Of a stretch of DNA of 64,000 nucleotides, positions 2,484-36,239 are shown piece after piece (position 1 is the first letter of the stretch; each line of letters begins with the position of its first letter). The stretch is taken from assembly GCA_030704615.1 (NCBI GenBank), contig CM060732.1, positions 60,636,001-60,700,000 on the forward strand. Reading direction: 5' to 3'. A model generated the notes under the pieces. The model had not been told where the DNA came from, made no database searches, and saw nothing but the letters and a program-made list of their open reading frames with translations. This stretch comes from Takakia lepidozioides (lineage: Eukaryota > Plantae > Bryophyta). The translations under genes were made by a program, and so were the position numbers.

Positions 2484-4073
2484 TTGTTAGCTGCCAAGAA
2501 CAAGACTGGAATTGTGAACCAGCTCTGAACAAAGCAGCGACAATTGCTAGAGTTTCGGCCTGTTCGATGGACTGACAGCTGCAGGTCGATATGGGCAAAC
2601 TCGTGATTACAACAGGTGTCATGATTTGAATATTCCCCGGTTTCCACCATGGACTCCTTGCATTTTCTTTTTTTTTCTTGCGCAATTTTGTCTTCTTCGT
2701 TCATGGTATTGCCCGGAGGTATGGTTCTTGTAAGACTTTCGACCCCGAATGTCAGTTGCTTAATGCAACGCTCGATCTCAGGACTAGTTACCACCATATT
2801 CAATGTTAATTCATGGATGCGCAGCCGTTGAGTTTCTTCAATGTCCTCCAACTCTTTGATTCGGCGGTCTCTTGCAGCCAGTTCTTCTTCCAATGTTGCA
2901 TGCGCTTACATCTCTCACCCCCTCGTTCTCCGGTACTATTCACGTATTTTCCTCCCATTGTCCCCGAAGTCCGTGTCAAGTTATTTCACTACTAGTGTGA
3001 AACTAGCTAGGAAATAGCTAGCTTTTACATATTGACATTTGGGATTGGCCCAAGTGTCAATCCAGGGGTCAAGGCAGATTTAGGCCCTGGAGTGGTTATC
3101 TTCACGGCAAGTGTGGGAGGCTCATCTTTCTCGAGTTGAGCCTCACCGTGCCTAGCTATGGTGCCGTAGTGTGGATTCCCCATGGCGTGAGGTGCACTTG
3201 GCTTGACTTGTATTTGAGTGATGAGGTTATATATGCATGAGTTTATGCTTCAGCTTTGTGAGCTCGTGCTTGTATTCTTCATCTTTATCACTCGAGAAAG
3301 ATGAGCTTGTATCTGTGAGTGCTAGATACGAGTTAGTTGGAGCATTTGTGGTTTTTGCTTGAGAATGAGAGAAACCAGGTTGTTATGCAAAGAGCACCGT
3401 GGAGCTCTTGGTTGTTAGAGCGGAGGCGATAAGGGTTAAGAGGTAATAGACCTTGGCATTCGATCTTCAGCTTCAGAGATGAAAGCACCATGCTGCAGGT
3501 AATTCCAGAGCACCTTGATGGTTTCAGATTGTGTACATGCATGAGCAAACACGATTGGAAAGAGGACTAGAGTCTCTTGTTTTCAAGCTTTAGAGAGCTA
3601 GAACGGAAGGGCTAGGGCTGGTTTCCACTTGGGGTGAAATAAAAGCACTTATAGGGCCTATGTGAGTTGGGGTTTCAACTTCAAGCTTAAAGGGAGCACA
3701 ACTCTTGAAGCAGCAGGTGCAGGGGCTGGATTAGGTGTGAAGGGCATGCTATGGTCAAGAAAAGCACGTGAATGAGTGCCTACAAGGGCTGGAAGTCAGC
3801 CATGTTTGGTTAGTCGTCATAGGGATCAATGACGCTGTTTTGTGAGTTAAAAAAAAGCTTGTGCACTTAGTTTCGGTTGCAAACATCTTCCTTTGGAATT
3901 AGAGCTACTATTGGTGGTGTGTGGGGGCCACAAAGAGCAAGAATACCTTGCTGATTCCTCACAGCCGCCATAGCTAGGTGCAAAGAAGCCTAGAGCCCAA
4001 GAGACACAAACCCTAGCTTGGCATGGCTAAACCCCTTGGAGAAATGGCTAAACTGCCATGAGTGGCCATGGAT

Positions 4074-4444
4074 GGGGCTGTGACAGGCTGTGCCATGTGG
4101 CCTGTGGGGCTGTGACGGGCTGTGACAGGCTGTGACAAGTTGTGCCCTGTGCCCTGTGGGGTTGTGACAGGTTGTGACAGGCTGTGATGGGCTGTGGCGG
4201 GCTATGACAGGCTGTGATGGAATGTGAGGGGCTGTGACAGGCTGTGGCGGGCTGTGACAGGCTGTGATGGGCTATGCCCTGTGGCCTGTGACGGGCTGTG
4301 ACGGGCTGTGAGGGGCTGTGACAGGCTGTGGCCTTTGGGGGTGACAGGCTGTGACCTGTGGCCTGTGGGGTTGTGACGGACTGTGACAGGCTGTGCTGGG
4401 CTGTGAGGGGCTGTGATAGGCTGTGACATGTGGCCTTTGGGGCT
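4074..4444. repeat. GGCTGTGACA-type tandem array, ~10-bp period (left half)
   Basis: Repeated GGCTGTGAC(A/G) units read directly. Confidence 0.95.
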
Positions 4445-7400
4445 TGATGGAGAAAAAGAAGGGAGTGAGGAAGAAAGGAAAAAAGAAGATGCAGACATGC
4501 AAAGTAATGAAGAGACTTTGGCTGCAGTAATATGTCAGACCAAAGCAGAAATTACCATTGGACAGCTATTAGATGTGGCACCTTATTGTAGGCACAGGCT
4601 GTATCAAGCAATCAATCGAATTGCCCAAGAGACAGGAAACACAGACCTGAACAGCAAGGTGACCAGTTATAATGTGAAGCCAGAAGGGCGAGAACCAGTC
4701 ATGGACTTTGATGATTCTATGCCAGTAATCCAATTGAGAATTGGAAGCACAGAACTAACTGATGTACTGATAGATGGTGGTTCTGGAGTAAATATCATGA
4801 CAGACCAATTAAGAAAAAAGCTTGGTCTAAGTAACATGAAACCAGCCCCATTTACAGTAACAATGGCAGATCAAAGAAGTGTGCAGCCATTGGGATTAAT
4901 AAGAGGAGTTAAGATACAGATACAGAAAATGATCTTTATGATCACAGTAACTGTATTAAAAATGGATGAAGTCATGGAGGCTTACTCCTTATTATTGGGA
5001 CGTCCGTGGCTGAAACAGGCCAGGGTATTCCATGACTGGAATTCTCAGTTACTAACCGTGCATAATGGGATACACGAGATACAAATTACCACAAAGAAAT
5101 CTAGTAGATTACCTGCTACAAGAAGACCTCGAGGAGTCAGAGAGTATGACTGGAGAGGAGGACTGGATGAGGAGCAGGAAGCTACCCTATTTGCTGCACA
5201 CCCAGAGTGGGAGCAGGTTGCAGAGATGCGGCTGGAAAGCCTAAGTTGTTTGAGAGGTATCTGCTGTGGTGTAGTGACAGCAACACCAACTGAAGAGGAA
5301 ACTAGCATTTACCCATCACATTTCTATGAAGAGAGAGAAGGAGAAATAGAAATCCTAGAAGAACCAGCCACTGTGAGCTTACAGGATGAAGTGGTGACTG
5401 GTTGGACAATCACAGCTGATGAGCAGGTGAGAGAAGTAAATGTGGGAACTCAGGAGGAACCGAGGATGGTGAAAGTAGGAGCTGATTTGGAGCCGGAATT
5501 CTTCGAAGAAGCTAAAAGCTTGTTCATCAAATACAGAGATGTATTTGCTTGGAGCTATGAGGATCTAAAAGGGATACCACCTGAAGTTTGTCAGCATAAG
5601 ATTGAACTGGAACCAGGGTCAGTACCAATCAAGCAGGCGAGGTATAGAATGAATCCCAACTACGCACAGAAGGTTGGAGAAGAGATAAAGAAGTTGGCTG
5701 AGGCTAAGTTTATATACCCAATAGAGTATACAACTTGGTTGTCACCCATTGTTATAGTTCCCAAGAAGAATGGCAAACTAAGAGTATGTGTGAACTATAA
5801 GAAGCTGAATGCTTGTACGAAGAAAGATCCTTTCCCTTTGCCATTCACAGAAGCAGTATTAGACACTGTGGCAGGCCATGAGATGTACTCATTCATGGAT
5901 GGCTTCAGTGGTTATAATCAAGTGCAAGTGGCAGAAGAAGACCAAGGGAAAACAGCTTTCATCACAGATTGGGGGGCTTATGCATACAAAGTCATGCCCT
6001 TTGGACTTTGTAATGCACCAGCGACCTTTCAGAGAGTGATAAGTGAATCTTTTCATGAGTATCTGGATGATTTCATGCAGTATTCTTGGATGATTTCAGT
6101 GTGTACAGCTCTAAGAGTGAACACTTGCATAAATTGGAGTTATGTTTGGCCAGATGCAGGATGAGAGGTCTGGGCCTGAATCCAGAGAAGTGTACTTTCT
6201 GTGTGAACTCAGGGGTGCTTCTGGGACACATTGTGTGTAAGAAGGGACTCCTTGTGGATCCCAGAAAGACAGAGTCCATTAAAGCATCTCCACCACCAGT
6301 GAATGTTAAAAGTCTACGGAGATTCCTTGGGCAAACCAGTTATTACAGGAGATTTGTCAAAAGGTATGCACAAATAGCAGCACCATTGAGCAAACTACTG
6401 AAGAAAGATGCAGTGTTTGCCTGGACAGCGGAATGTCAACAGGCATTTGAGGAACTTACACTGTCAGTAACAACTACACCTGTACTGATTAACCCTCACT
6501 GGCATGTAGTATTCCATGTTCATTGCGATGCATCAGGAGAAGCGTTGGGAGCGGTGTTAGCCCAGAATGTTACAGGGAATATAGATTCACCTGTGTATTA
6601 TGCTAGCCGGTTGATGAACAGTGCTGAGAGGAACTATAGCACAACGGAAAGAGAAGCATTGGCAATGATTTATGCAGTCAAGAAATTCAGGCATTACCTA
6701 TTGGGAAGAAAGTTTATGTTTTATGTGGATCACCAGGCTCTGAAATATCTGGTGAACAAACCTTTGATAAGTGGAAGGATAGCGAGGTGGTTAATAATCT
6801 TGCATGAGTTTGAGTTCGAGGTTATTTACAAGCCTGGCCGTTTGCATCTTGTGGCAGATCATTTGTCACGACTAACAACAGGAGTGGCCGCCACAGGAGT
6901 GGACGATCAGTTACCTGATGCGAGTTTATTTGTAATGGAGGTGCAAGGAAGTGCAGATGAATGGTTAGATTGGCAGTGGCCAATCAGATACTACCTTGCT
7001 CATGGTCAGTGCCCACCTAGTTATGGTAAGGAGCAGAGGAAGAGAATTGCTATCAAAGCTTTACCTTATACTATGGTAGGAAGCAGAATGTATAAGTTAG
7101 GACCTGATGGAGTACTAAAACGATGCTTGTACCACCATGAAGTAAATAAAGTTTTGGCGGAAGTTCATAAAGGAGTGGCTGGAGGTTATTTTGGAGAAGA
7201 GACTACCAGTAGAAAGATACTACTCGCAGGATACTGGTGGCCTACTTTGTTCAAAGATGTACACGAGTATTGTCAGAAGTGTGATGAATGTCAGAGGCTA
7301 GGGCCTTTGCAGAGATCTGGAAGGATGGCCTTGCATCCTACAATGCCTACGGAACCATTTCAGAAATGGGGACTAGACTTTGTTGGACCAATTAACCCAC

Positions 7401-8575
7401 CATCCAAGAATACACGAAACAGGTACATAATTACAGCCACTGATTATACTACAAAGTGGGTGGAAGCTAAAGCTTTGAGGGACAACACAGCCAAGTCCAC
7501 AGCAAGGTTCCTGTACGAGAACATACTTACACGATTTGGCTGTCCCTTAGAATTTATTAGTGATCAAGGAAGTCACTTCATGAATGAGACCATTGAGTTG
7601 TTGACTAAAGAGTTTATGATTGTGCATAGAAAGAGTACAACATATTACCCACAGGGTAATGGGCAGGCAGAGGCTACCAACAAAATACTATGTACTATCT
7701 TGACTAAGATAGTCAATGCAAACAGAACGGATTGGGATACGAAGCTGCTGACAGCTTTGTGGTCATACATGACTTCATATAAAGTCACCACTAAGTATAC
7801 ACCATTCCAATTAGTTTATGGTATGGAAGCCTTACTTCCAGTGGAATTCCTGTTACCTACCATGAGAACGGAGTGGGGAAAAAGAATGGAATTGCAAGAC
7901 TCCATCAAGGTCATGAAACATGAATTATACCATGTGGAAGAAGTACGTGCTGATGCAGCTGATAATATGACCAGAATTCAGATGAAGAGAAAGGAACAGT
8001 TTGATGAAGGCAAGTTAAAGACTTTTAAGACGGGGGATTTGGTTCTATGGTTATAAAAGAAAGGAAAGATTCAAGCTTCTAAGCTTAAATCACCATGGAA
8101 AGGACCTTATGTCATACAAAAGATGTATGATAACAACACCGCCATGTTACAAACCATTAACAAAGAAATGCTGGGAAGAGTCAATGCAAATAAGTTGAAG
8201 GGGTACAGTGGTATCCATGACAAACCCCTGCAGCATGATTTGCATATAGAACCGCAAGAGCAGTCACGGGCTGCACCAGTGTTACGAACGGAGTATGGAA
8301 CACTTGTCGCTAGGCCCAGCATATATGACCAGGGTGGGCAAAACAAACGTGACACAGCCTATCACAGCCCATCAAGGCGCAACACAGCCTATCACAGCCC
8401 ATCACGACGTGACACAACCTATCACAGCCCAGCAAGGCGCAACACAGCCTATCACAGCCCAGCACGGCGCAACACAACCTATCACAACCTACCACAGCGT
8501 GTCACAGCCTATCACAGCTTACCACAGTGCATCACAGCCTATCACAGCGTAACACAGTATGACACAGCCTACTAA
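4445..8575 (+). pseudogene. pol: pol polyprotein (protease, RT, RNase H, integrase) with one frameshift and one premature stop
   Basis: Protease LIDGGSGVN; RT KDPFPLPF...DGFSGYNQ...MPFGLCNAPATFQ...FLDDF (frameshift ~6078); RNase H CDAS...NYSTTEREAL; integrase WGLDFVGP...SDQGSHF...PQGNGQAE. TAA at 8054-8056, then in-frame WKGPY motif; frame stays open to 8575. Confidence 0.93.
8351..8572 (+). repeat. CACAGCC array (30-bp higher-order unit of three 10-mers) at the end of pol
   Basis: Units such as CACAGCCTAT CACAGCCCAT CAAGGCGCAA; translate in the pol frame as (TAYHSPxRRx)n. Confidence 0.9.
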
Positions 8576-9260
8576 AGTTACACCATCCATAGAATCAGTG
8601 ACAAGTGGACACATAATAACTTCAGGAAAATGGATGACGGAAGAGGAAACGGAAATTACTTTAAAAATAGACACGTGGAGGTCAGGGCGCGACACACAGC
8701 AGACAATGAAGTGCAAGGACAGGTGTCAAAAAGAAAGAAGACAGGAACGGCCGTCAAAAGGGATGAAAGCCAGGCCCATTAATGAGTACGGAAAAAGGGA
8801 AACGGAACGAACGGCAAGTACAGAAAAGCCGAATTCTTGTCACATGTGTGATCCTAGTGGACTATCCAAGAGGGAAAGTCCACTAAAGAAGATAAAATCT
8901 AAAATCCAGTCACAGCGGATACAGCCAATAGAAAACCAGAGAAAGGATCAAGAAAATGGAGGGAAATTGAGCGCAAGAGGCGGCGTCGTTCTGAGTAACG
9001 GGCGTCTCGACAGGACAGGCCATAAATGCTATAACTTGGAAACTATGGAGGAACTAACAGACTATACGCTCGCAATATTACTTACGCAGTGGCATAGACA
9101 CGAAAGGACAGAGCAGAGCTTTTCTCTTGAGCAATGCTTGCAAGCCCCGCAGGCTTACAAGAAATTACCCATAGCTTTCTGCGGCAACCATACGTTTATG
9201 CTTTGTGCACTACAGGCATTCCTGCAGTTGTTACAGCCAAAGCAGTTCTGTGAGTCTAAA

Positions 9261-11584
9261 ATGAAGAGAGTGAGAGGAATGGAGGAAATCAGGGTGAAGA
9301 GCACCACAATTCTGCAGAAACAAACGATGGCTACCCCACAGGCGATAAAGATACTGGAGGAGCTGAGATTGGAAGGATTGCAAAGCCTAGATTGGACACT
9401 ACACCATAGACAGTACATGTTACAATTTTTGCAGAACTTTGAGCCAAGGACAGGAACAACAACGGTGAAGGGAGTTGAATTAATGATTACTCCCCTATAC
9501 CTCCAGCAATTGTTTCGATTGCCAGCAGGTCAGGTGCATGTGGAGGAACACAGGGCAAGACTGCAAATAGGGGACTTATTCCAAGAAGGGAGTTTCTTTA
9601 AAACTCAGGGTTATGCTTGTACCAAAGCTGTGTACCCAGGGTTAAAAGAGATAGGCCAGGTACTGAACGTTCTGATTGCCCTGAAACAGAACCAACAATA
9701 TTTGAGCAGATCCTTCACAGAGGAAATACTCAAAGGCCTGAAGGGACAAGAGGTACAATGGGCGGACATAATGTACAACGCACTGGTAGAGGAGATGAAA
9801 AGATTACAAGGTACTACCGCAAAGTCTCTATCATCATAGTGTCTGGCCCAATCATTGCTCAAATAATCCTTGATTCTGGCATACTTAATGCACAAGAAAG
9901 GAAAGAAATGGGAGTGTTTGAGCCAGAAACAACTGCAATGGAAGAGCAAGGCTCTTCACACAGTGAGGGTGGACTAGCAGCACAACCCGAGACTAAGAGG
10001 CAGAGAAGGGGAAAGACTGTAGTGGCGGATCCACTGGCTTCACGGATTCCGCATGATAATGTTTCCCAAGCTCATGGCCAGGAAGGGGCACAGCAGCACA
10101 GACAAATGCTATTACTGGAAGCAGGACCTTCAGAGAGGGAGGAGGAAGTTACTTCTGCATCACAACCATCACAGCCACTTGAACGACTTGTCACAAGGTC
10201 ACAAGTTATCCATGCAGCTCAACCCGAAATAATTGATTTGGAAAGTGAAGGGATAGATATTCCAACTACAGAACAGATAGTGGCAGAAATAGAGAAAGGG
10301 GACCTTCTCTATGAATATTCTGGTCTGGTCAAGGAGACAGAAATCCCAGAGGTGCAACAGTTGCCCTAGGGAAATCCTGAGGTGCATATAATACACACAC
10401 CTGTGTCGGAGGTACCACATGCGGAAGGTCATGACACTGTAGCACCGGTGATAGATGAAGTAGTTCAGGAAGAAAATCCGGTGGGACAATGGCCTGAATG
10501 GTTAGTGAGACATCATACTGTTGAAGATCAGGAGGAACAGCAGCAACCTCACCATGATGACCCTCAACAGGCAATGCTGATGAGTTCCATAGGCAGGACA
10601 CTTAATTTGTTGGGGACTTATGTCAAATCCCATGTTCCAATTACCCAATTGACAGCCTTGAAAGAGGAACTCAGGAAGGAGTTTGAGGCTCGACTTGCCA
10701 CTGAGTGTGCAAACAAGGTCGATGAAGAGGTCACTCTCAAGATGAAGCAGGACTTGGGCAATACAGAAATGGCTTTGCAATTGGCCAAGCAACAATTGAT
10801 TGAGGCAGGCCTCGCGCAAGACCAGTTGCACGAAGCACATAAGCAACAGCTATACCAAATGCAGGTGCAGCATGAAAGCAAGTTGCAAGAACTGAATGCA
10901 CTACATACGGAGTTGCAGACAGTGCATAACAGGATGGCGATACAATGTGCTACATTTACAACTATGCTTGACCAATCAACAAAAGAAATAAACAGTCAAG
11001 CGGAAAAATGTACGAAGGCAGAAGAAGAGAATGTTGAGCAAATGAAGCTCATTGTCGATATGAAGAATACAATCTGCCGCAATGAAGATACTTTCAAGCA
11101 ATACAGGCAGATGGAAGCTGATCAAGAGAAACACATCGTGGAGTTGCAACAAACCATCATGGCCAATAGAAATGAAATCGCGGTCAGTAACAAGGCTTGG
11201 AAGGAAGCCAATAATCTACTTGCTGCTTATGCGCAATTGGTTGAACCACAGGCGAAGCGCATGGAGGCTTTACAACAGCAGTTGGAATTGTACAAGCTAA
11301 GAGAGGAGCAAACTCTCAGGGGAACCACAAGCAGCTTGGTGGATAACAGCCTTATGCAGGTCTGGTTAGCACAAGGGCCAGTAGAGGGCAAAGCCCCACG
11401 GAAGCTCACCCAAAGCGAAATGAATGAGCTCAGGCTGCAGGTGCAGAACATTGCCACAACTACTATAGACAATGTCTATAGTAGGATAGCAGAGTTACAA
11501 GAGGATGTAGACGGACTCCAGACTCAAGTGGAAGACCTCACTTCAAACATCACCAAAGAGTCTATATCCCTCAGGAACAGCTAA
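9261..11584 (+). pseudogene. Accessory ORF A: Athila ORF1/plant transposon protein-like N-terminal domain, acidic linker and long coiled coil
   Basis: ORF-track pieces 8559-9839, 9617-10369 and 10382-11584 join through a frameshift near 9835 and an in-frame TAG at 10367-10369. FLQNF...TVKGVELMIT...LFRLP and VQWADIMY resemble Athila ORF1-type domains; E/Q/L heptad-rich C-terminus. Start codon uncertain. Confidence 0.65.
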
Positions 11585-12774
11585 TGGCTTCTTATTTACA
11601 AGCCAGAACTTTGGCTTTTCAGTCTTCACAGGAGGTGCAGGAGATGCCAATGATACAAGAGCCAGTACCACCACCACCACAACAAGTCACTGTACCAGTA
11701 GCTGAACCTGTGGTTACTACAACCACACCACAGCCACCACAGCCGGAGGTATGGGGCAATGCCGCTTTTAACCCACCTAAAACTCCAGCTGCAAGGGAGT
11801 ACAACAGGGCTATGCTTATACCCTTCAACCAAATTCCCATCATGTTGGATTTGGCTTGGAAAGAATTTAGTCCTCCGCAATCATTCGCACATTACTACCA
11901 AATCATGCGTATTTGGCTGCCAGTGGCAACTAGGACTAAAGTTCTTCCAAACAATCGACATATTGAAGATCATCACTTTGCACAATACTGGCACGAGGCA
12001 GGTACCATGTTGAGGGAATTGGTTGCTTTCCAGGTTGTACATGGACTCATTTATACCAAGACCAAGGAGATAGCAAGTATTGTCATGGGGTGCGGGCTAT
12101 ACTACGCTGCTTGTTTTCTGGTACGTTACCACATTGAGCAACAAAAGATGCAAACACGTTTTCAAAGTTATTCCAGTGGAGATCATTGGGTATTACCTTC
12201 GGTGCCACCTCATATGTACCTATATGACCCAAAAGTTATGATGCAAAAGGATTCTCAAATTCGTTCATGGTTTCAAGCTGCCTGCAACCATTTGTCAACA
12301 CAGAAATTCGGACTTGATGACATTTTCTATAAGGGACATGTGGCATGGAAGTACTTGCACGCTGCACCAGTAATTGGTACCCCACTCACCTGGACAGACA
12401 AGGAGCTCAGTGTCTACACCAATTTTGCTGTTCAGCGGTTACACCAAGTTGTAAAATGCAAACTTCCAGACATGGTAGGACAACATTGTATGCCCCAGAT
12501 GATTCCACAAAAGGTTCGAAAATTAAAACATCTGAGAGGTGATGAGGATTCTGATACAACTGTTTCTTCACAGAATTCTTTTGACATGGGAGAAGACTAT
12601 GCAATTCAGATGGCATAAAAGAAGCGACGGGGGTCTCCTATGCCGGAAAGGTTACCTCGATATCAGCCTCCAGAGGGCCTCACTTATCCAGGTAGTAATC
12701 AACCATCTCCGTCAACCAGAGACAGACCTCGGGCTCGTACACACAGTCCGCCACGAAACTCTCAACGTCAATAA
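11584..12774 (+). CDS. Accessory ORF B, unknown function (344 aa; ~396 aa if the TAA at 12616-12618 is a recent CAA>TAA change)
   Basis: ATG overlaps the ORF A stop (TAATG). After the TAA the frame continues KKRRGSPMPERLPRY...RARTHSPPRNSQRQ to 12774. Confidence 0.65.
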
Positions 12775-12835
12775 GGTGCTCACTCACAAAGGTTTGCTAC
12801 TCGGAAACAGTAAACCGTGAGGACACGGCTTTTTG

Positions 12836-12848
12836 AGGGGGGAAGGGG
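12836..12848 (+). promoter_or_regulatory. Polypurine tract
   Basis: GAGGGGGAAGGGG ending 3 nt before TGTTAGAGG. Confidence 0.8.
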
Positions 12849-12851
12849 TAA

Positions 12852-13895
12852 TGTTAGAGGACTGTAGGGGACTTAGACACTTATACGGGATCTGTAGGGT
12901 ACCCTTAATTTTTGCACAGACTGAGACCAACAGGAGCCTTAGGGGTGACAGCAGCGCACTGTAGAGGGGGGTTACACAGCCCGTCACAGTCGTCACAGTA
13001 GACACAGCCAACACAGCCCGTCACAGTCGTCACAGTCGACACAGCCAACACAGCCCGTCACAGTCGTCACAGCCGACACAGCCAACACAGCCCGTCACAG
13101 TCGTCACAGCAGACACAGCCGACACAGCCACACAGCCACACAGCCAGTCACAGCCCGACACAGCCAAACACAGTCGCACAGCCAGTCACAGCCCGTCACA
13201 GTTTCGCACAGCCAGTCACAGCCCGTCACAGTTTCACACAGCCAGTCACAGCTTGACACAGCTGTCACGATCATAGGGAACGAAGAGTAGGACAGGGAAC
13301 GACTGTGGGGAACAACACATGCGAAGGGAACATGTTAGTTCACAGACGACGGTTAGTGAGGAAAACGGTTAGAACCGCGGATAGGAAGATAAAGGGGGAC
13401 TTCGGGGGAAGATGATGATCATTATTCAGAGGAGGACTTCTTAGTCAGGCTGGAGCGGAGATCGGAAGCAGAGATGGAGAGCACGGTGAAGGAGGAAAGA
13501 GGATTAGTAGATGCTTGTTATATGCAAAGCTGTAGTGATATTGTAGAGCAGATTAGAGACACAATGGCTTCGGCCTGATACCTGATAAATCATAATCTGA
13601 TACTTATACGATACAATCACACTGTGTAGAGAGATCTGAGTGAAGCTGTGGATTGAATGGATGAGTGAAGGAAACCGATAGATTGATGAAGCAAACTGAT
13701 ACTTAATTATCAATGGTAAGATAGTTAACATGAATACCATAAGGGAAACAAATAGGAAACAACCCCATGATACACTAGCTGTAGGTCATGACTGATTGTT
13801 CTGCGCGGGCTGAGTACTTAGAGATTTCCAACTCTTCAATCTTGGAGTTTCCGCCTCGAATAGCGAAGGGATGGGTGAGTAAAAGCCGCGTGACA
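12852..13895 (+). repeat. 3' LTR (~1044 bp) with a CACAG array at 12975-13266
   Basis: Starts TGTTA after the PPT and ends CGCGTGACA where the host array resumes (ACAGG). The first ~130 bp recur at 24216. Confidence 0.75.
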
Positions 13896-14284
13896 ACAGG
13901 CTGTGCCATGTGGCCTTTGGGGCTGTGAGGGGCTGTGACAGGCTGTGCCATGTGGCCTTGTGATGGGCTGTGACAGGCTGTGGCCTGTGGGGCTGTGACC
14001 CTGTGACCTGTGTAGGGCTGTGACAGGCTGTGCCCTGTGGCCTTCGGGGCTGTGACGGGCTGTGACCTGTGGCCTTTGGGGCTATGACGGGCTGTGGCTT
14101 GTGGGGCTGTGATCCTGTGACCTGTGTAGGGCTGTGACAGGCTGTGACCTGTGGCCTTTGGGGCTGTGACAGGCTTTGACCTGTGGCCTTTGGGGCTGTG
14201 GCCTGTGTGGGGCTGTGACGGTTGTGACCAGTGATCTGTGTGGGCCTGTACTGGTCTGTGGTGGCCCGTGTTGGCCTGTGCTGA
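13896..14284. repeat. GGCTGTG tandem array (right half)
   Basis: Same units as 4074-4444. Confidence 0.93.
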
Positions 14285-14899
14285 CTCGTGGAGGCACTGG
14301 TGGACTGCCTAAGGACTGACATGTGGTCTTGAAGGCCGAATTTTGACGCTCGTGGAGGGTGGTTTGAGAAGTATCTTCATGATATTCCCATGGTCATGCA
14401 AGTGAGGGAAGAGAGGAGATGAAGAGTGTTGGGATGAGGACATGCTGGGGTTAGGCATTGCTTTAGCTTCTCTTCTTCGTAGTTTTCCACCCTCTCATTA
14501 GGCCAAGACCTTTCCGTAGGTGGAGGCAAGAGTCAGTCTGGGTTTGGGCTGGGGTGTCCTTGCAGGAGCAACACTATGGAGTTGTTTTTGGTATGGGGGA
14601 GTTGTCGTTCTGATTTCTTGTGTTTGGATCCCCTCCATACTTGCATGCTTGACTGTGCGCCATGTTAGTTTTGTGTGGGCGCTTGTTTTTATAGTGATTG
14701 GTCCGGATTTGATCACCGGCCAGTCCTAGAGCATGCTGTCGATGGTGAGGCTGGGGTGATGACCAGTCATGCCATCATTGTTTCTCCTGTGGTGAGGTTG
14801 GAGGTGATGACCAGCCAACCATAGGAGTGCTTGCGGTGGATGCAGGTGCAGGTGTAGGCTATGTTAGGAACCTAATATTCCAAACCATAAGCCGCAACA

Positions 14900-17421
14900 G
14901 GTTCCCCGGTTACCTTGTGGAGAGGGGGTTAGGGACATGTTCATGACCGGTTGAGTGACAGTTTGTCAACACGGAGGTGCCACTAGTTGCTGGGGATAGT
15001 GCCGGTTCGAGCACTAGCGATACTAGTGGGTACACGAGACGAGGTGTGCGGATTAGGCCACCTTCACCTCCTGTGTCTTCTACGGAAGGTTATGTTTCGG
15101 ATTGTGAATCAGGGGGACTCACACCGGCGGTGCAAGTTGTTTCCTTGCCATTGTTTGTGGGACACAATGGAGCAGATGTATGGAGCTACCAAGGGGCCAC
15201 GAATGTACTCTGGGGCGGTGGGCACCATCGAGTTGGATGATTTTATCCAAGAGTTTGATAGTTGGTGTGATTTGCAGCAAATGCGCAATCCACAATTATT
15301 TACGCCTTTCATGGCATGGAAGGGGCTGATTCAGCACCTTGAGGGGCCGCCTATGGATGATTACCATGAGTTTAGGCGGGGGCATGAGGTTGAGATCGAG
15401 GAGTGGAGGATGTACTGGTCACCCGACTATGTCTCCATCACTAGGGGCACTAGAGCCACGAGGGCAGTGGCTACACCTGCCGCTGCACCGGCAGCTTCAG
15501 TAAGCAGCAGTGGGACTAGTGGGACTAGTGGTCCCGTAGCTACGACGTCCACCCAAACAACTGCTGCACCAGCACCAGTGGTGGTGCTTGCCTTCAACCT
15601 TGTTGTGGAGTTCTTCGAAGAGTTGAGAAAGAACTACCAAGGGGTGAGGACAGAGAAGTTGCAAGAGTTCCAACGGAAGCCTACTGAGAGCTTGAGGGAT
15701 GCTTTCACTCGCATGAGGCGCTTGATTAATGTAACCCAAGGGGTTATGGAGGCTCAGGCAGTCCAATTCTAGTATGGGATATTGGACAAGGAGTTGAGGA
15801 GAAGGGTGCGGGATGGAACTCTCCTGCAAGCGGCCCAACTCACCTTAGCAAATGTGTTTTTGCTGGCAAAGCGGATAGAGCTCAACATGGTGGAGGAACG
15901 AGTGGTCATGGTGGGATTCGGGGTAGTGGTGCTCCTAGCCAGCCACTACCTCGACGTGCTCAAGGCAACAAGGGGGCTCAGGTGAAGCCGAGGGAAGGGC
16001 AGAGAGGACCTCAGATGCAGGGGTCTTTCCCTTCATTTGCTGGCCAACAACAGACGGATGTGGTGTGCTGGATATGTGGAGGACCCCATGTCAAGAAGGA
16101 TTGCCCAGAAGGAGGCAATGGTTTGGTAGCGGCACAGCCTGCACAGTTTTGCAGTGTGGGCATTGTGGCAAGTACGGGCATGGAGAAGCCTAGTGCTATG
16201 GTTTGCATCCTGAGTTGCGCCCATTCCAGTTCCAAGGGAACAATGGTGGCCGGGGGCGAGGTGGAGCAGCCCAGAGAGGACGAGGTGGCCAGGCACGAGG
16301 TGCAGGCCAAGGGCAAGCTCAACATAGCCAAGGACACAGAGGTCAGGGTGGTGACCAAGGCATGGCCAACCGGCTTCAGCAGCTAGAGCAGAGGCTCGCT
16401 GCCATGGCTACAGCTCAGGTGGTACCGGCTCCAAGGTCGGATGGTCCACCTTCTGCTCCTGAGGAAGGAAATATGGGAGACATGGGATTCATGTGCGGAG
16501 CAGCACTACCATTAGTGCAGGTGGAGTCTGCTGCAGCCGTGACTCGAGGAGCAGCACGAGTTCCTGAGCCACGAGGTGCAGAGGTGGAGTTGGATCCACA
16601 GCGTGGGGAGGCAAGCCGTCAGGCTAGGCTTCCTCAATCATTTACATTGGCGGAGACAGTGTCAACGCCATCCATGGCACCTAGTTCTCGCCCGACTGTT
16701 ACTGAGGCGGAGGTTACTATGCCATTGGGGAGTGCTACACGGGTAGCACCACTGCCTAGTGTTGCCAAGGCTAGGGCAGCTAGTGTGCTGCTGGGAACGG
16801 CCACATCTGTGTGCCAGGCTCCATTGTTCACGGCTACCATGATTGCGACGCCGGGGGTAAGACCAGCTGAGGTGTTCAGGTTGGCAGCTACAGTCTGTGA
16901 GCGTGGGGGGTTTCTTCATCTTCTGCGGAGATAGTGGGAGGTGTAGTGCCGGAGGGATCCTCGGATTTGAGTGTCAAGACTGTCACGGCGGCGCCATGGC
17001 AAGCTGCAGCTGCCAGGTTGATGGAGCTGCCAGCTAGGTCAGCCATTGAGCGCGCCATGGTGACACCTGGAGTTGTCATGTTAGACAACCAGGATGACAT
17101 TTTCTGTTTGAGTGGACCGGCAGGCAAGAGGCCCCTCGGGTGTCGCTGGCAGGCCCCTCGGGTGCCGCCCTGTGGTCTTTGCCTTGGAACGTCAGTCCGC
17201 GATAAAAAAAATTAAGGTATGTGGGGGCTGTCAAGCTTGGGGCCCCGCTGTTCCTGCCGCGCCCTGGCTTGCCCCCGAGTGCTCTCAGTTGACTTTATGG
17301 GCTCTTCCTCCTAACTCCTTGGAGCTTCTATTGATTATACTCCGGCCAATCCCCGGGCTATACTCCCAATACCTTAGAGCTTCTCGCGGAGGCCACAAGT
17401 GGCGGGAGCCCCTGACTAACA
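14900..17421 (+). mobile_element. Internally deleted Ty3/gypsy element: frameshifted gag, then 3' UTR, PPT and a short LTR (17229-17421)
   Basis: Gag-like LDDFIQEFDSWC...FFEELRKNYQG...FQRKPTESLRDAFTRM; zinc knuckles CWICGGPHVKKDC and CGHCGKYGHGEA*C; pol absent; AAGGTATGTGGGGGC precedes TGTCA...TAACA. Confidence 0.7.
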
Positions 17422-17484
17422 GCTATGGTAAAAAACACTAAAGCAACAAGAACTAGATAACATCTAGATCTAAATCTTAGACCT

Positions 17485-18716
17485 TGTACATGACCTTCTT
17501 TTGACAAGCCGAGTTTCTTTCTCATAACAAAGCCAACATTGGGTGGGGCTAGAATCCAACTTTAGCTCCCACGAAATAATGCTCTTCACTACTAACAAGC
17601 TCGAGCTCTACTTGTTGTCAAGGACGAGAATATGACTGAACACAAATAAGAGATAAGACTAGAAGTACAAGACTAGACAAGAAATCAAGGTCGACGTGGC
17701 CGAACGCATGGTAGGTAAACATGAATCAAGATAATCTTTATAACAATGGACAAGAGTACAAGATACTGGAACTCGACTCGAATACTGGAATGCTGGAAAC
17801 TGGACTGGGGTACCGGATACTGGAAACTAGACTAGAGTACTGGAAGCTGGACTGGAGTATTGGGACTGGGAACAAAAGTAGCTTGAACTTGTGTTGGCGA
17901 GACTGAAGAGTGTACAGTCTCGCCTCTTATATATACTGGCTACTAGGAGGTTCCTAAGAGGCTTCCCTAAATGAGGTTTCTTGATGGAGAAGTTTCCAAG
18001 ATTAAACAAAGGTTTCTTGATAGAGAAGTTTTCTTAAACAAAGGAGGTATCTTCATGGAGAAGTTTCCTCCAAAAGAAGCTTCATGAGCAGTTTCCCAAA
18101 TTACTCTTGGTAATTTGGTAAACTCCCAATAACTTGGTAACTAGTGGTAACTTATGGTAAATCATGGTAGATCACAGTAACTTTAGATAACTTGATAATT
18201 TTTTGTATTTACTCCTGGTAAGTTCCTCTGGGTTATATCCGTGACACTTGCTAGGACTTAAGCTTCTTAAGCAACAATGAGGCTAGATTCCAACTCTAGC
18301 TCCCATAAAAACATACAAAACAAGAACAAAGCAAGAAGAAAGCAAAAAAGTGATGAACGAGGAGGGCTTGCCTCTCTTATATACTACTTTTGGGCTTAAT
18401 AAAAACTGTGAAATAATAATTAAACTACTCTAGTCGATTGGGAAACTTGTTGACCAAGCAAAAACCACTAATAAATATGAGCCATAGATGAATAGATTTC
18501 ATCCAGTTGGATGATTTTTGGCCAACCAATATTCATCCAATATAATTTCATCCAACTAGATGGATGATTGTTGTCGTTGTCGCTTGCGCTGGATGGATGA
18601 AGTTCTCCGCTCATCCTTCAATTTCCCTTGGCTGCTCCGGCCAATCAAATAATGAATAAACCTCTTAAATTAGGTCATCGCGAGTGCTCTTTGTTTCGTA
18701 ATTCGATGCCGCTACA
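17485..18716 (-). mobile_element. Solo LTR (host of a nested solo LTR)
   Basis: TGTA...TACA termini; TSD GACCT/AACCT; minus-strand TATA near 18377. Confidence 0.6.
17616..18246 (-). mobile_element. Nested solo LTR (631 bp)
   Basis: TGTCAAGGA...TCCGTGACA termini; TSD CTTGT/CTTGC; internal ACTGGA and GGTAA short repeats. Confidence 0.8.
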
Positions 18717-19071
18717 AACCTTAACAGAAAATTCCCAAATTTTGTGGATAATTTAGGTAAAGATCTCTTGACGTCCCGGTAAACCTCGGGCGAATCAGAG
18801 TCTTTTAACTCCATTTTGTCGACGTACTCTTTGCATCCCGCCGCTCCGAAAGACTACGCTTCCGTGGATTATCAAACTTGGTGGTGCTTCTCCGGGTCTT
18901 CGACCCTGCCACTGACTCCCCGACTGTTCCATTTTTTTAACTAATATCTTTTATCCAAATGTCCAAACTGTCTACCTAAAGATTAAAAAAAATGATCGAA
19001 AAATAAATATGTACTTAAATATGCATCTACATAAGGGCTTGTTAAGACTATAGTATTTATGCTTTTACATA

Positions 19072-19144
19072 GCCAACATATAGCCCAGTGGTAAAGGCAT
19101 ATACCATCTTACGAATGATTGTGGGTTCAAACCACCCTGTTGGT
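19072..19144 (+). pseudogene. tRNA-like sequence (tRNA pseudogene or SINE head)
   Basis: 73 nt; acceptor stem GCCAACA/TGTTGGT; A box TAGCCCAGTGG; B box GGTTCAAACC; anticodon and T arms pair poorly. Confidence 0.5.
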
Positions 19145-19569
19145 TGTTACAAATGTATCCACCTTCCTATCGAAAGACAGTAGTTCTTTTGGGTCAAGTG
19201 ACACCATAAGTTACGTTTGCTTCGGCAACGCGTCCACATTCTTCTTCTTTTACGCTTTTAGCAAAACGAAAAAAAATCTGTATACAACTTCTGTTGCTTA
19301 GCAACAGAATTTTGAGAAATATATTTACGGGTGATATGTACAGATCCGAAGGAGTAGGAGAAATCATGTAGTTGGAATAGATAAGTGATGAGTTTTGAAG
19401 AAAGAGTTAACTCATTAAAAAACGGTTTTGGCGAAGGGACAATAATATTAGGTCTATGATAGAAGCTTACATCGATCAACTTGCCCTACGCGAAAGAAGA
19501 AGGTGGATTAATGATCGAGTTTGGTTGGATAGAATACTACTAGATGAACGTCAACAACGATTCTATTGG

Positions 19570-20502
19570 TGTCGTGACCGCTAATGTGACTCGATTGCGA
19601 GTGCCCAGGAATTTATTTAGGAGTCCTACACTTGCGATCTTCCTTAGCAACTCACATTAGATGTCATGTTGATTATCTGACGCAGTGTGTCCAGTGCCAG
19701 TATTTTGTAGAACATTACATAATCTGCAGAGAGCATTGTAATGATTGTAACCAACCTCTCCCACTAGAAAGTGGCGCGGCGCGCGCAATATTATTTGCAG
19801 TTGCACGCTGATGTACCCGCACAACCTCTTTTTATTTACAATATATTAATTTGAATTCTTTCATTGTTGTTATGGTTATACACAGTTATATTAGACCTCG
19901 GTCGTATCAGCAACACTAACTGGATAAGCCAAATAGTGACGATGAATGTCGAATTTTGCTTCTAGTTCCCACCACAATTCTAGTTCATTTCGAAGAATAG
20001 ATCCTAGAATTAGACGTAGATTATTTCGCGCAGCAATTAGGAAAGATTTTTTCAATTACCAAGGAGTACACTCCAAGTAACAACGTCTGAAAAAGAAACG
20101 AAGAGAGATTCCGATTAATCAACCCATAAATCATTTGAATTGAGATTTGAACGGACCAGACTCTGAAGGTTCTGAATCTTCAGTATTATCTCTATATATA
20201 AGCCTGGCCACACCCAATAACCCGACATCTAATCCACCGTTGAATCCAAGAGGTTCAATGGCGCAACCACAACCACCTCTAGTACCACCAACACCTCCCG
20301 CATCGGCACCTCCGGATATTCCAATCGTGGTGTCAGCAGGTTTGATTCCATTACCACTACCAAGCTTGAATGATGCATATTGGTTGATTTCGTTCCCTAC
20401 GACCTTAAGGAGAAGGGTGTTGACTTGGTATTGGCAACAACCTTGGGGGTCATTCTAACATTGGACTCAATTTCGGGATGTTTTTCTAAATCATTTTAGA
20501 GC
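19570..20502 (+). mobile_element. Truncated Ty3/gypsy element: LTR (19570-19915) and gag remnant
   Basis: TGTCGTGA...TCAGCAACA termini; gag motif LISFPTTLRRRVLTWYWQQPWGSF*HWTQFRDVFLNHF. Confidence 0.6.
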
Positions 20503-20729
20503 AGTACATTAGTTTACAAGTATTCTTCTGGCCAGACAGCTTATGCTGGTGTAGTGGAGCTAAGCAGGGACCAAAAACGGGTGCGGATGGCTGTAGTCGG
20601 CGCCGACCTCCCCGATTTTCGGAAATTTCGGGAAAGAAAAAAAAACAAAAACAAAAACACTCAGTTATAGAAAACGCGCATATTCCCACGGTATCCGTAT
20701 CAAGAGCACTATTCACTTATAATCGGCAC

Positions 20730-21960
20730 TGACTCTCTAGGTTCGGGAGTTAACGAACCTGCTTTTTGGTATCCGAACCTAAGTTCGATGTCATATTTCA
20801 TTGAGCATCGAACTGTTTGAGTATATGAAAAATAGTCCAAAATTACTTCCACAAGTGCCAAATTTAAAAAATATTTTATTAATTATGTCTTGCTCATGGT
20901 AATTTCTGCTCATGCTCATGCTTAAACCTGCTCAACGCTTATGAAATATACATACCCTCGCCAGCTCTAGCGGTCTCGATAACATCCAAAAATATATATA
21001 TTTTTAATGTTGGTTTTTTCTTGTTCTCTTTCCGAACGACATCAGGTGACGGACGAGAGTATGCGATTTTTTATTATTTTTTATTTTAAACATTTGTTGG
21101 GGTTCGGATGAACGCCGAACGATGGCGACGGTCGGACGACCACGACAGTCCTTTCAAATTACTAATATTTAATTTAATTAAAAAAAATTATATGTGTAAT
21201 TTTAGGATCGCCGGAGTTAGGCGTCCCGAATTTTGTAAAAAAAATTAAATATTTTTTGTATAATATCGGGAATTTTTAAAATTTTCGTCTGGTTTAAATT
21301 TTAGACCGCTAGAGCTGGCGGTTCTTCTCCCTTGCAACGATGAGAAACTATTGAGAATTATAGCGTTTAAATTTGAAATTTTTGTTTAATGTTCTCGTTA
21401 CTAGAGCTTTATACCGAAAAAATCACAATTTTAGGGATTGCTTTGTGATAACTCTGAATTTCTTGCTTTCCTATTAAACCAACTGGGGAATACTTTATTA
21501 CTACAAGATCTTCCCGATCATTTGTAATTATACGTGCTAGGTAAATTTGAAACTTATCTTGGGCTGACAATTGTTGGACGTTTGAGATTATATCTTTGAG
21601 ACGTTTGAGATTATTGTTGGACGTTTGAGACTACATCATTTTTATAATTGTTTAGCAACATACTTAGTTGACAGTAAAATAACCAGTGAAGATGATTTTA
21701 AATCACAAGATGGTCGTCCTAATTTTTCTAATTTTTAAATTTGGTTGAAATTTGAGACCACCAGAGTGTGCAGTCCTGATCTTTAAATGCTATGACGGTC
21801 TTGTCATTTCTTTAAAAAAATAAAATTGGATGGATAAAATTGGGACCTCTAGTTCAAAAAATAATTGGGATCGCCAGTTTTAATTAAAAATAAATTAAAA
21901 CGAATTAAAATAAATTAAATAAATTAAAAATTTGAATCGCCAGAGCTGATGATACCGAAT
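20730..21960. mobile_element. AT-rich DNA-transposon-like terminal region with an internal 18-bp perfect inverted repeat
   Basis: CGCCAGCTCTAGCGGTCT (20959-20976) / AGACCGCTAGAGCTGGCG (21303-21320); related ATCGCCAG motifs; TTGGACGTTTGAGA repeats. Confidence 0.4.
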
Positions 21961-22516
21961 TTATCCAGTTTGGTGGTTCTGATTTATTACCAGGGGCAAC
22001 GCAACCTCTGGGACTACCTCATTCTTGAAACTCTGCGGACCGTTTGGCACCACGAACTACTCCCTCAACCTCCCATTCCTCTACATTTTGTCAGAGCCCT
22101 TGCCCAGCCTATTGCAGAAATGTCTGTGCTAATTCTACTATAAGATTTCAGATAAGCCTTAGTATTATAAACTCATACCCAAATTGCTGCAGACATTCCA
22201 GTGCTCTTCATTGTCTCTCTACTCTTGATAGCAATCTAAAAACAAGACAAGCTGAAGACTAAGGATTGCAAAAACTCTTCTCTTGAAGTTCTCTTCCTCT
22301 CATTCATTCCAAATACACAGAATGCAGAGACATGCATAATAGTAAGCATCCAGTCTGTCATGAAGACACATCTTGTGGGTACAGTTGAGCTGTGAAAGGA
22401 CTAGGATTCTCTGTAACGCTGTCAATAACAAAGGAAGTGTGTCTTTTCTATTTACATGCAATAGTAGTCACTGTGCAAGAAAGCCACACCTGAAGAGTCA
22501 ATAACTAGACCATATC

Positions 22517-23438
22517 TTAAACCCTATCATTGCAAATAGGGCAGATCGTACGTCTGTGCAACCAGTTATCAAATATAATCTTTGTGATTTTGATAACCAC
22601 AAAACAGCTTCCGAATCAGCTATTGGGGAAGGAACGCGTCCTGGCAAATAGTACACACATCCTCACTGAATGTCGTTGTATGAACTTCATACACAGGCAA
22701 GCCAGAGGAAATGACTTCCATTGTCAATCCCTTATTGTGAACAGATGCATCAAGTCCTATGAGAGCCTCGTAGTCTCCCTCATCGAAATCACGGGCCAAC
22801 TGCTCAAGACCCTGTGGAATGAAAGCGGCAGCATCCACTTCCACCACAGGTCGCAGGAGCTGCTGTTGAGCACATGCATCCTCCTCATGGGGGGTGTTAA
22901 GAGCTCGGTCAAGCTCTTGAGTCACTCTCTCATCCTCCATCACTTGATCCTAGTCTCTCTGCACCAGCTTTCTCGCGTAGAGCTTATCTGCCACTCCTAG
23001 TCTGACTTAGAGTCCGAGTCACTCTCAAAAAGGACAATCACTTCTCTATCTTCAGACGGACGCATCTTTAAGGAAGAGGAAGATTCACCTCTCCAATGCT
23101 TTATTGCTCTAATGTCGCGGCCCTTTGCCTTGAGGGCAGGGGGTCGGGACACATGAGGGGCTGCCCCTGTGGTGGGGGCAGCGGCAGCGATAGGTATGGG
23201 GGGCTGAAGCACCCTTGAGTGCCCAAGGCACTCAAGGAGGCGGAGGCGCTCACTAGGTGGAGCCCCGCACACCGGGTTGCGGTGGAGGTGGCTCCACAAG
23301 GGGTGGTGGTAGCTTAGTGGGACTTAGTGGGGGTGGCATAGGACTCACCATGGGGTGGAGACCTCGAGGTGGGAGTCGTGGGGAGTCTTGGGACTCATCA
23401 CGGTCCATTGGGGCCGCGGTGAGTGGGCCAAGACTCAC
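22517..23438 (-). pseudogene. Intronless RING-H2 E3 ligase pseudogene (SDIR1-like pre-RING motif)
   Basis: RDFDEGDYEALIGLD...CTICQDAFLPQ*LIRKLFCGYQNHKDYI/DNWLHRRTICPICNDRV*; stops and frameshifts; TATATATA at 23531-23538 upstream. Confidence 0.75.
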
Positions 23439-24215
23439 CGCGACTCACCACCGGGAGTCGAGGGTTTTCGTGGTGGTTCGCCATAAAATGGCATGGCTGG
23501 TTATGAAACCCCCGCGGACAGCTACAGAAGTATATATAGGGAGTAGTAACCCCGAGAACGGTGCAAGCCCGTTGGTGACCAAAAACTAGTGAGTAAGCGA
23601 GCGAGCCGGAAAGCGACCAAAGAGTGGGGAGCTGTTCCGGACTGCCATCTACCAAAGGGAATTCTCCTAGTCCCAAATAGGTGGAGGGTTTAGAGGGAAG
23701 CGGAAGGGGACCGTTATGTCCCGGTGAACAGCCGAAACTCCAAGTTGGCCCGGCGGCCAGGTTGGGAGTCAGGCGCGCGCATCAAAGCGAGTAACTATGA
23801 CTTGAAGGGGAGTTTACCGAACTGAGGTGTGCGACATCTAACCTGACTGAATGTGTTCAACACAAAGACAATGTGAAAAAGTGAAAAAGACTTCCCCCCT
23901 ACACTAATGTGGAACACCACCAATGTGAACATCCAACTTAATGATAAGAAATATATTGTATGTATGCTAGTATAGTTATATAGATATTAAATTGTTAGAT
24001 ATCCAACCCTCGAATTTCGCATGCGATTTTTTTTTTTTTTTTTTGCATTATTACTATGCTCGATATTTGTTCCAAATATAGTCTTTCACTACCCATCGTA
24101 ATTTAAACATGATTAAAGTAAATATCGTGATATTAAGAACTAATGAAAACTATTCCACGTTCCCTGATTGTCTCAATATTAGCCCTCTTCGAAGGTCCAG
24201 AGGGGCTGTGACAGT

Positions 24216-24345
24216 TGTTAGAGGACTGTAGGGGACTTAGACACTTATACGGGATCTGTAGGGTACCCTTAATTTTTTGCACAGACTGAGACCAACAGGA
24301 GCCTTAGGGGTGACAGCAGCGCACTGTAGAAGGGGGTTACACAGC
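24216..24345 (+). mobile_element. 5' fragment of the same LTR family as 12852-13895
   Basis: Near-identical to 12852-12980; truncated where the CACAG array begins. Confidence 0.92.
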
Positions 24346-36103: not shown

Positions 36104-36239
36104 AGTAGCTGATGGGTTAGAAGGTCTACACCTGTGATCACCTGGCCCTTCCTTAGCAGATGACCTTACTTGTTTAAAGCACCCTTACCCTTTTGATCTC
36201 GTTTCCATTGCTCATAGATGGCAGGTAAGTCTGGCTGCA

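Follow-up and report, generated by a model that had tools for sequence, protein, structure and literature searches.

A Ty3/gypsy retrotransposon within an array of its own reversed motif in Takakia lepidozioides: one insertion or two

The question raised by this locus is whether an LTR retrotransposon of Takakia lepidozioides may find its target through a short motif that it carries itself. In the window (the whole stretch of DNA analyzed here, 64 kb), two LTR junctions of one family are located beside GGCTGTG-type sequence, the reverse complement of the CACAGCC arrays inside the element. A preliminary description had taken them for two insertions at the same phase, made by an element that might home to its motif. 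We refer to this element as element A and to the gypsy fragment on its right side as element B (Table 1). The junctions at 13895 and 24216 are probably not independent, but the right and left ends of one insertion, which would leave the homing idea with a single case (n = 1).

Table 1. Features of elements A and B and of the adjoining arrays, with positions in the window
Feature	Position	Strand	Basis or remark
GGCTGTG-type array, left part, copy 1	4073..4447	+	TRF, motif map, sequence
Element A pol (protease, RT, RNase H, integrase)	4448..8056	+	Pfam, tblastn of relatives, ORFs
Internal CACAGCC array 3' of integrase	8352..8557	+	TRF, motif map
Accessory ORFs, about 4 kb, frameshifted	8559..12618	+	ORFs, Pfam, protein searches
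Polypurine tract, directly 5' of 3' LTR	12835..12851	+	sequence; gaggggggaaggggtaa
3' LTR of element A, 1044 nt, TGTTAG...GTGACA	12852..13895	+	sequence, TRF, self-BLAST
U3 CACAGCC array inside 3' LTR	12974-13262		TRF, motif map
Putative right target-site duplication ACAGG	13896..13900	+	sequence; pairs 4/5 with 24211-24215
GGCTGTG-type array, right part, copy 2	13896..14290	+	TRF, motif map
Element B: leader, gag with CCHC knuckle, pre-protease region	14291..17131	+	no pol behind
Array-unit-identical 15 nt plus T	24200..24215	+	last 5 nt ACAGT (24211-24215), left target-site duplication if the insertion is single
First 130 nt of A-family LTR	24216..24345	+	sequence, self-BLAST

Structure and classification of element A

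The pol ORFs of element A span 4413-8056, and Pfam matches to an aspartyl protease, RVT_1, RT_RNaseH, Integrase_H2C2, and rve were obtained in the ORFs at 4413-6164 and 6086-8056. The domain order protease, RT, RNase H, integrase identifies the element as Ty3/gypsy (Metaviridae), and its best pol relatives in the protein search were bryophyte, fern, and gymnosperm elements about 50% identical to it. Pfam gave no Chromo match in 6086-8056 or 8123-8575, and the element is thus not a chromovirus, a group defined by a chromodomain at the integrase C-terminus.

The short motif CACAGCC is arrayed in the noncoding parts of element A. As described previously, there is one array in the LTR (12974-13262) and another directly 3' of the integrase (8352-8557). 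The accessory ORFs that follow the latter had no homologs in a set of 5.8 billion proteins. For the accessory protein, Pfam contained nothing relevant even at E ≤ 10, a protein atlas search yielded no usable match, PDB sequence searches gave no match, and the single-sequence AF2 model had a pLDDT of 35.

Element A is 5'-truncated, with no 5' LTR, gag, or PBS within the 64-kb window. The gag ORFs of its lineage relatives had no tblastn match anywhere in the window, a PBS search with the initiator-Met consensus gave matches at chance level only, and the window contained no tRNA genes. The 3' LTR begins with TGTTAGAGG at 12852, immediately after the purine tract gaggggggaaggggtaa, and terminates with ...gccgcgtgaca at 13895, followed by acaggctgtgcc. 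The previously described end ...GTGACA at this position, with ACAGG in a GGCTGTG array after it, can thus be read from the sequence. The placement of the LTR end is further supported by its fit to the lineage: a complete relative of element A, L006, has LTRs of the same TGTT...ACA type (TGTTGG...GCAACA), and its flanks have GGACA in common. A join by microhomology at 13895 was rejected, since a GTGACA-mediated join would not leave the extra ACA seen at the junction.

Arrays and element B beside the 3' LTR

The GGCTGTG arrays (4073-4447 and 13896-14290) have the opposite orientation to the CACAGCC arrays and a period of 10 bp according to TRF. Copy 1 runs directly into the pre-protease sequence of element A, and the insertion point at 13895 is located in the spacer between two cores. 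The 11-mer GGCTGTGACAG occurs 11 times in the window, against 0.03 expected, with 10 occurrences in the two arrays and one at 24204. The 2 copies are only 72% to 75% identical to each other by self-BLAST, and a duplication after the insertion was rejected as their origin for this reason. It was also noted that the flanking array is 72% to 75% complementary to the U3 array over about 240 nt, and 88% to 92% over 25-nt stretches. There is zero similarity outside the array, and the flanking array was therefore rejected as an old inverted A-type LTR. No GGCTGTG arrays were present in the metagenome-contig relatives of element A (L005, L006) or element B (L001 to L004), so the arrays are not a lineage-wide trait.

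Judged from its sequence, element B is a different, older, and GC-richer gypsy fragment than element A. It is colinear with L001, a relative from a moss metagenome, over a region that begins with gag and stops just short of the protease of L001 itself. The same region is unrelated to the pre-protease and protease sequence of element A, with which it would overlap. Together with the gag queries of A relatives, none of which matched in the window, these results led us to reject element B as the missing gag of element A.

They also bear on the possibility that 13896-17131, with its GGCTGTG array, leader, and gag, is the 5' internal region of family A itself. In that case, the LTR at 12852-13895 would be common to 2 tandem elements, and either the LTR would continue past 13895 or this position would mark no insertion junction. 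Element A without gag and element B without pol do look complementary, and arrays stand before both. However, the available evidence runs counter to this explanation, which we regard as already contradicted and extremely improbable. In addition to the colinearity with L001 and the overlap that would result, the GC content is 52% to 58% in element B versus 40% to 47% in element A, no LTR is located upstream of copy 1, and no PBS-like TGG is found within 15 nt of 13895, compared with 3 nt past the LTR in L006.

One insertion or two

The LTR start TGTTAGAGG recurs at 24216, where it is preceded by gaggggctgtgacagt (left flank GAGGGGCTGTGACAGT). The preliminary description of a near-identical LTR start directly after ACAGT in otherwise non-array DNA was borne out: 12852-12980 and 24216-24345 are 98.5% identical over 130 nt by self-BLAST, and the 145-bp piece at 24200-24345 has AT-rich non-array DNA on both sides. 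Apart from 12852-13895 itself, the LTR matched the window only at 24216-24345. This second match is limited to 130 nt and breaks off where the U3 CACAGCC array begins, at its first CACAGC, and the 145-bp piece consists of the spacer with one motif on either side (GCTGTG...CACAGC). The 15-mer GAGGGGCTGTGACAG at 24200 is an array variant that occurs 3 times in the arrays and nowhere else in the window. This restriction to arrays, and the excess of GGCTGTGACAG, led us to reject a chance adjacency of motif and LTR start. A hairpin in the present 145-bp piece was also rejected, as the fold was no better than those of shuffled sequences.

The junction sequences confirm the earlier observation that ACAGG and ACAGT are in one register and orientation; compared on the assumption of a single insertion, they match at 4 of 5 positions. 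Several fits suggest that they belong together. The part missing from element A is exactly the part represented by the fragment at 24216-24345. When the left flank of 24216, minus the 5-bp duplication, is joined to the right flank of 13895, the sequence across the joint matches the adjacent array unit at 13927-13959 exactly over 33 nt. Furthermore, the end of copy 1 (...CCTTTGGGGCT-TGA, 4447) and the array piece at 24202-24214 are array-contiguous with an edit distance of 1, a value reached by just 0.8% to 4.7% of random cut positions, although the exact end of copy 1 is defined only within 4444-4452, which gives the abutment test some post hoc freedom. Placed in sequence, the end of copy 1, 24202-24214, and the start of copy 2 rebuild successive 41-nt units.

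The fragment at 24216-24345 is most likely the lost 5' LTR of element A itself. The reading that we favor, with confidence that is evenly balanced, is a single insertion, with the duplication ACAGT/ACAGG, into the array upstream of element B, followed by a local rearrangement in which the 145-bp junction piece was moved by about 20 kb and about 3.4 kb were lost. In the order of events that we infer, element A, as a young Ty3/gypsy element without chromodomain, would have entered a GGCTGTG array of about 780 bp through the action of its integrase, in the spacer that separates two GCTGTG cores. This array would have been located upstream of the leader and gag of the unrelated, older element B, and a 5-bp duplication of ACAGG would have resulted. 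The event would also have left the U3 CACAGCC array of element A and the flanking array in inverted orientation, about 130 bp apart, as a quasi-palindrome. Later, the left junction would have been broken at 3 points, one about 13 to 15 nt inside the array, another at nucleotide 130 of the LTR, and the third at the border of gag and protease. The 145-bp piece, with the array tip and LTR start, would have come to rest at 24200-24345, in intergenic AT-rich DNA some 20 kb farther right, and the remainder of the LTR, the PBS, and gag (about 3.4 kb) would have been lost. On this reading the common phase and orientation of the junctions follow automatically and are uninformative about target choice.

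Other observations weigh against a single insertion. In-register fits in repetitive arrays arise by chance at the level of a few percent, and the T versus G difference between the duplications has a chance of about 0.15 at the observed LTR divergence. Moving a 145-bp junction piece requires a rearrangement with multiple breaks or a repair with a captured fragment, and such a relocation is much rarer than a second insertion of which a remnant stays in situ.

A real preference for the array or its phase, expressed in two independent insertions, is a possibility to which we give clearly less credence than to a single insertion. In one form, which we consider unlikely, GGCTGTG arrays or units are the preferred target of family A, with the cut in their ACAG(G/T) spacer, an element-encoded CACAGCC binder tethers the preintegration complex by binding both cDNA and target, and the copy at 24216 lost everything past LTR nucleotide 130 in a single deletion. 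Both junctions have the features expected of an integrase (TG...CA LTR ends, a 5-bp stagger, no microhomology join), in situ LTR remnants are far more common than relocated pieces, and chance placement beside the 11-mer GGCTGTGACAG is about 1e-7. Element A has motif arrays, a large accessory gene, and no chromodomain; gypsy-type errantiviruses do integrate in a sequence-specific manner (PMC5408687), and the short motifs bound by VANC proteins are arrayed in the transposons that encode these proteins (PMC5735166). However, a motif-guided landing at 24216 requires either that a 15-mer identical to one array variant stood alone in AT-rich DNA, or that a third array was present there and later deleted. 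Such a landing leaves unexplained why copy 1 stops where the piece at 24200 starts and why exactly this part is missing from element A. The target is non-palindromic, in contrast to those of errantiviruses, the accessory protein gave neither a Pfam match nor a homolog, with an AF2 pLDDT of 35, and there are 2 junctions at most.

A preference for arrays without reading of the motif is still less probable. Arrays phased at 10 bp could represent strongly bent or rotationally positioned DNA, or open, hypomethylated chromatin, that attracts integration, and a weak integrase preference would then select a single one of ten registers in every case. On nucleosomal DNA, retroviruses integrate with a 10-bp periodicity, which agrees with the 10-bp period of the arrays and with an insertion in the spacer between two cores. 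However, the independence of the junctions is as problematic here as for a motif-guided landing, and one array unit at 24200 cannot phase a nucleosome. Very improbable in our view is an origin of the 145-bp piece as captured filler DNA, copied from a third element of family A that is embedded in an array elsewhere in the genome, at the left junction of that element; the two junctions in the window would then be independent. This would account for an array-derived 15-mer in AT-rich DNA and for the T/G difference between the duplications. Left unexplained would be the agreement of the piece with the end of copy 1 and with the array unit right of 13895, as well as the absence of exactly this part in the neighboring element.

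No other copies of family A were recovered by exact scans for the LTR start (0 matches in metagenome contigs and viral contigs), and the ORFs of the window were absent from the protein collection searched. We consider it doubtful that family A generally prefers reverse-complement CACAGCC arrays, always in the spacer ACAG(G/T) and in one orientation, with the integrase guided by an element-encoded motif binder or by a phased structure. A lone insertion into an array of the element's own reversed motif is nevertheless suggestive.

Known systems and implications for family A

Illegitimate recombination and fragment capture at double-strand breaks reshape nested LTR retrotransposons in plants. Similarly, element A is located inside a noncoding region of another element and is 5'-truncated at a non-homologous join, with a short junction-bearing piece in unrelated DNA nearby. 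It differs from these in that the host sequence is an array of its own motif reversed, and that the resulting quasi-palindrome may have caused the breakage. Tethering of LTR elements is known for Ty3 at Pol III starts, Ty5 via Sir4, Tf1 via Sap1, and chromoviruses via the chromodomain. To our knowledge, these tethers are host proteins or histone marks. For element A, too, a tether has been proposed that joins the integration complex to a factor at the target, but this tether would be self-encoded, which would be new, and a chromodomain is absent.

The Drosophila errantiviruses gypsy, ZAM, and Idefix, which like element A are of the Ty3/gypsy type, integrate sequence-specifically into the short palindromes TATA, CGCG, and ATAT (PMC5408687). 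Their insertions recur at a short defined sequence, whereas here there are at most 2 junctions and probably one insertion. The target of element A, ACAGG with its putative 5-bp duplication, is non-palindromic and falls within the spacer of a repeat with a 10-bp period; as read from the sequence, GGCTGTG-ACAGG-CTGTG has no dyad symmetry about the duplication, and the junction at 13895 is not of the palindromic errantivirus type. In Arabidopsis, the motif arrays associated with VANC21 of VANDAL21 and with VANC6 are found in DNA transposons and serve anti-silencing rather than targeting (PMC5735166). As in VANDAL21, a short motif forms fast-evolving tandem repeats in the noncoding parts of a transposon with an extra gene, and the occurrence of the motif of element A in the unrelated element B resembles that of the VANC6 motif in the unrelated AT9TSD1. 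However, element A is an LTR retrotransposon, and its accessory protein, without detectable sequence similarity, is only a putative motif binder.

The window alone cannot carry a claim of targeted landing, because the junctions probably represent one event. If motif homing were true, a plant LTR retrotransposon that reads its own carried motif at the target would represent a new targeting principle, and family A would be the first case in plants of an LTR retrotransposon that homes to a motif by means of a self-encoded tether. Such homing would be usable as a tool for directed insertion. It would also explain the spread of motif arrays between unrelated elements, with elements that copy the motif, such as element B, becoming landing pads. 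As this locus suggests, a quasi-palindrome is built when an element inserts into an array of its reversed motif, and this structure may have destabilized the junction; if so, this instability would be a cost of such targeting.

Element A and its surroundings

The pol region of element A, a Ty3/gypsy retrotransposon, is about 50% identical to its nearest relatives, which are elements of bryophytes, ferns and gymnosperms, and no chromodomain was identified in the element. Downstream of the integrase are accessory ORFs that span about 4 kb, are frameshifted and have no detectable relatives, and then the PPT and the 1,044-nt 3' LTR. The right end of the first flanking array (copy 1) was joined directly to the pre-protease sequence of element A near position 4447, and no 5' LTR, PBS or gag of the element was found in the window, in which gag ORFs from relatives of its lineage matched nothing. 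The only LTR match beyond its own 3' LTR was a 130-nt piece at 24216. A complete relative, L006 (positions 2510-12545 of a 13.8-kb metagenome contig), contained LTRs of about 450 nt, a tandem repeat (51-nt x 7) upstream of the protease-encoding ORF and, after the integrase, a 682-aa ORF unrelated to the accessory ORFs of element A. The lineage seems to be characterised by 3' accessory genes that are large and variable.

Features located in the 64-kb window
Feature	Position	Strand	Description
GGCTGTG array, copy 1	4073-4447		flanks element A
Element A pol	4413-8056		protease, RT, RNase H, integrase; Ty3/gypsy type
CACAGCC array	8352-8557		within element A
3' LTR of element A	12852-13895		
CACAGCC array	12974-13262		within element A, in LTR
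GGCTGTG array, copy 2	13896-14290		flanks element A
Element B	14291-17131		gypsy fragment
RING-H2-like ORFs	22620-23299	minus	two ORFs
145-bp piece	24200-24345		array tip and first 130 nt of LTR
Inverted repeat	24998-25409, 44872-45283		two 412-nt arms
Second gypsy element	30991-38943	minus	pol at ~32053-36043
PPR-DYW gene	40824-43688		long, RNA-editing type
Second PPR array	~47000-48650		more decayed

The second gypsy element differs from element A and is older, since its LTR pair (~484 nt) is only ~95% identical. The long PPR-DYW gene contained internal 303-nt repeat units, and the second PPR array was located 6 kb downstream of it. The presence of a PPR-DYW gene identifies the window as land-plant DNA. 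The arms of the inverted repeat are 98% identical, located 19.5 kb apart, and enclose another LTR element and PPR-DYW genes; no matching target-site duplication was seen at the outer edges, and the arms could represent one repeat present in two inverted copies, or the scar of a rearrangement. On the minus strand, two ORFs without a match in Pfam look like exons of a RING-H2-type host gene and have a C-x-I-C-Q-D motif where the ORF ends; the 145-bp piece is located upstream of them, at a distance of about 0.9 kb.

Relation between the two junctions

The preliminary description reported two same-phase insertions of one LTR family, and the junctions were found as described. The 3' LTR starts with TGTTAGAGG at 12852, directly after the purine tract, and ends with ...GCCGCGTGACA at 13895, followed by ACAGGCTGTGCC, while a second copy of the LTR start at 24216 is directly preceded by GAGGGGCTGTGACAGT. 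The segments 12852-12980 and 24216-24345 were 98.5% identical in a self-BLAST of the window, with mismatches at only 2 of 130 positions. TRF and motif maps bore out that the element itself carries CACAGCC arrays, and placed the GGCTGTG arrays in the opposite orientation. The 11-mer GGCTGTGACAG occurred 11 times in the window against 0.03 expected, and was confined to the two GGCTGTG arrays and position 24204, which excludes chance placement.

The 15 nt to the left of 24216, GAGGGGCTGTGACAG, were identical to an array variant that, elsewhere in the 64 kb, occurs only within the arrays (3 times). Since the DNA on both sides of the 145-bp piece is AT-rich and, as first described, non-array, the piece is derived from an array rather than being a native lone site. 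When the left flank of 24216 was joined to the right flank of 13895 with one 5-bp duplication removed, the result matched the next array unit (13927-13959) exactly over 33 nt that span the joint. Copy 1 ended with ...CCTTTGGGGCT-TGA, a unit continued by the array piece at 24202-24214; this join was array-contiguous at edit distance 1, as reached by only 0.8% to 4.7% of random cut positions, values for which a several-fold penalty should be allowed because the end of copy 1 was placed with some freedom. Successive 41-nt higher-order units were rebuilt when the piece was set between the end of copy 1 and the start of copy 2. Finally, the LTR fragment at 24216, located 10 kb from the 3' end of element A, is exactly the part that the element has lost. 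Judging from these sequence matches, the sequences and phase of the junctions are real, but the junctions are probably not independent and would be the two ends of one insertion.

Element B and the LTR end

Downstream of 13895, array copy 2 is followed by a leader and then by a gag that contains a CCHC knuckle; these belong to element B. We rejected element B as the missing gag of element A because it was colinear with a relative, L001, on a moss-metagenome contig. The colinearity extended from the gag start to just before the protease of L001 itself, and this region was unrelated to the pre-protease and protease sequence of element A. Element B had a GC content of 52% to 58% versus 40% to 47% in element A, contained more frameshifts, and was followed by no pol. 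No PBS-like TGG was located within 15 nt of 13895; in L006 it was located 3 nt after the LTR, which has termini similar to those of element A (TGTT...ACA) and flanks that share GGACA. Position 13895 is therefore a credible LTR end, as first assigned, and the junction there is an insertion junction.

Element A is nested in the array upstream of the leader of element B. No GGCTGTG-type arrays were present in the fetched relatives of either element from other organisms, and the array of element B in this genome thus looks acquired. The 20-nt dimer of the GGCTGTG arrays was 88% to 92% complementary to that of the CACAGCC array in the LTR of element A, and element B may have copied the motif of element A, by analogy with the unrelated Arabidopsis element AT9TSD1, which carries VANC6 motifs (PMC5735166).

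One insertion or two

We consider a nested insertion of the ordinary kind, followed by local rearrangement, to be the most likely story, with moderate confidence. The target-site duplications ACAGT and ACAGG, which match at 4 of 5 positions, would belong to one insertion, making the shared phase and orientation of the junctions automatic. As a result of the insertion, the U3 CACAGCC array would have come to lie inverted relative to the flanking GGCTGTG array, at a distance of about 130 bp. These arrays were 72% to 75% complementary over ~240 nt and 88% to 92% over 25-nt stretches, and the relocated piece consisted of the spacer with one motif on each side (GCTGTG...CACAGC). Breaks at the quasi-palindrome base and the gag/protease border would have resulted in the loss of ~3.4 kb and the capture of the 145-bp piece at a break ~20 kb away, leaving the 4447-24346 segment circularly permuted. 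As the present piece folded no better than shuffled sequences, this breakage mechanism stays a conjecture. Copies 1 and 2 are read as two halves of one array; they were too diverged for a post-insertion duplication (72% to 75% identity, longest common exact stretch 30 nt).

Against a single insertion, relocated junction pieces are rare, whereas in situ remnants of separate insertions are common, and the duplications mismatch at one base. Two independent insertions, which with chance excluded would imply a real target preference, are possible but rather unlikely, and other readings account for the rest. Such a preference could be motif-guided via an element-encoded binder, as initially proposed. 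Sequence-specific integration of the gypsy type is known from errantiviruses, although at palindromic targets (PMC5408687), and VANC proteins bind arrayed motifs of their own elements (PMC5735166). It could also be structural, combining 10-bp-phased DNA with a weak integrase preference. The homing interpretation is based on one event, or at most two, and is undecided. Even with a single event, the landing of element A in an array of its own motif reversed is a notable coincidence.
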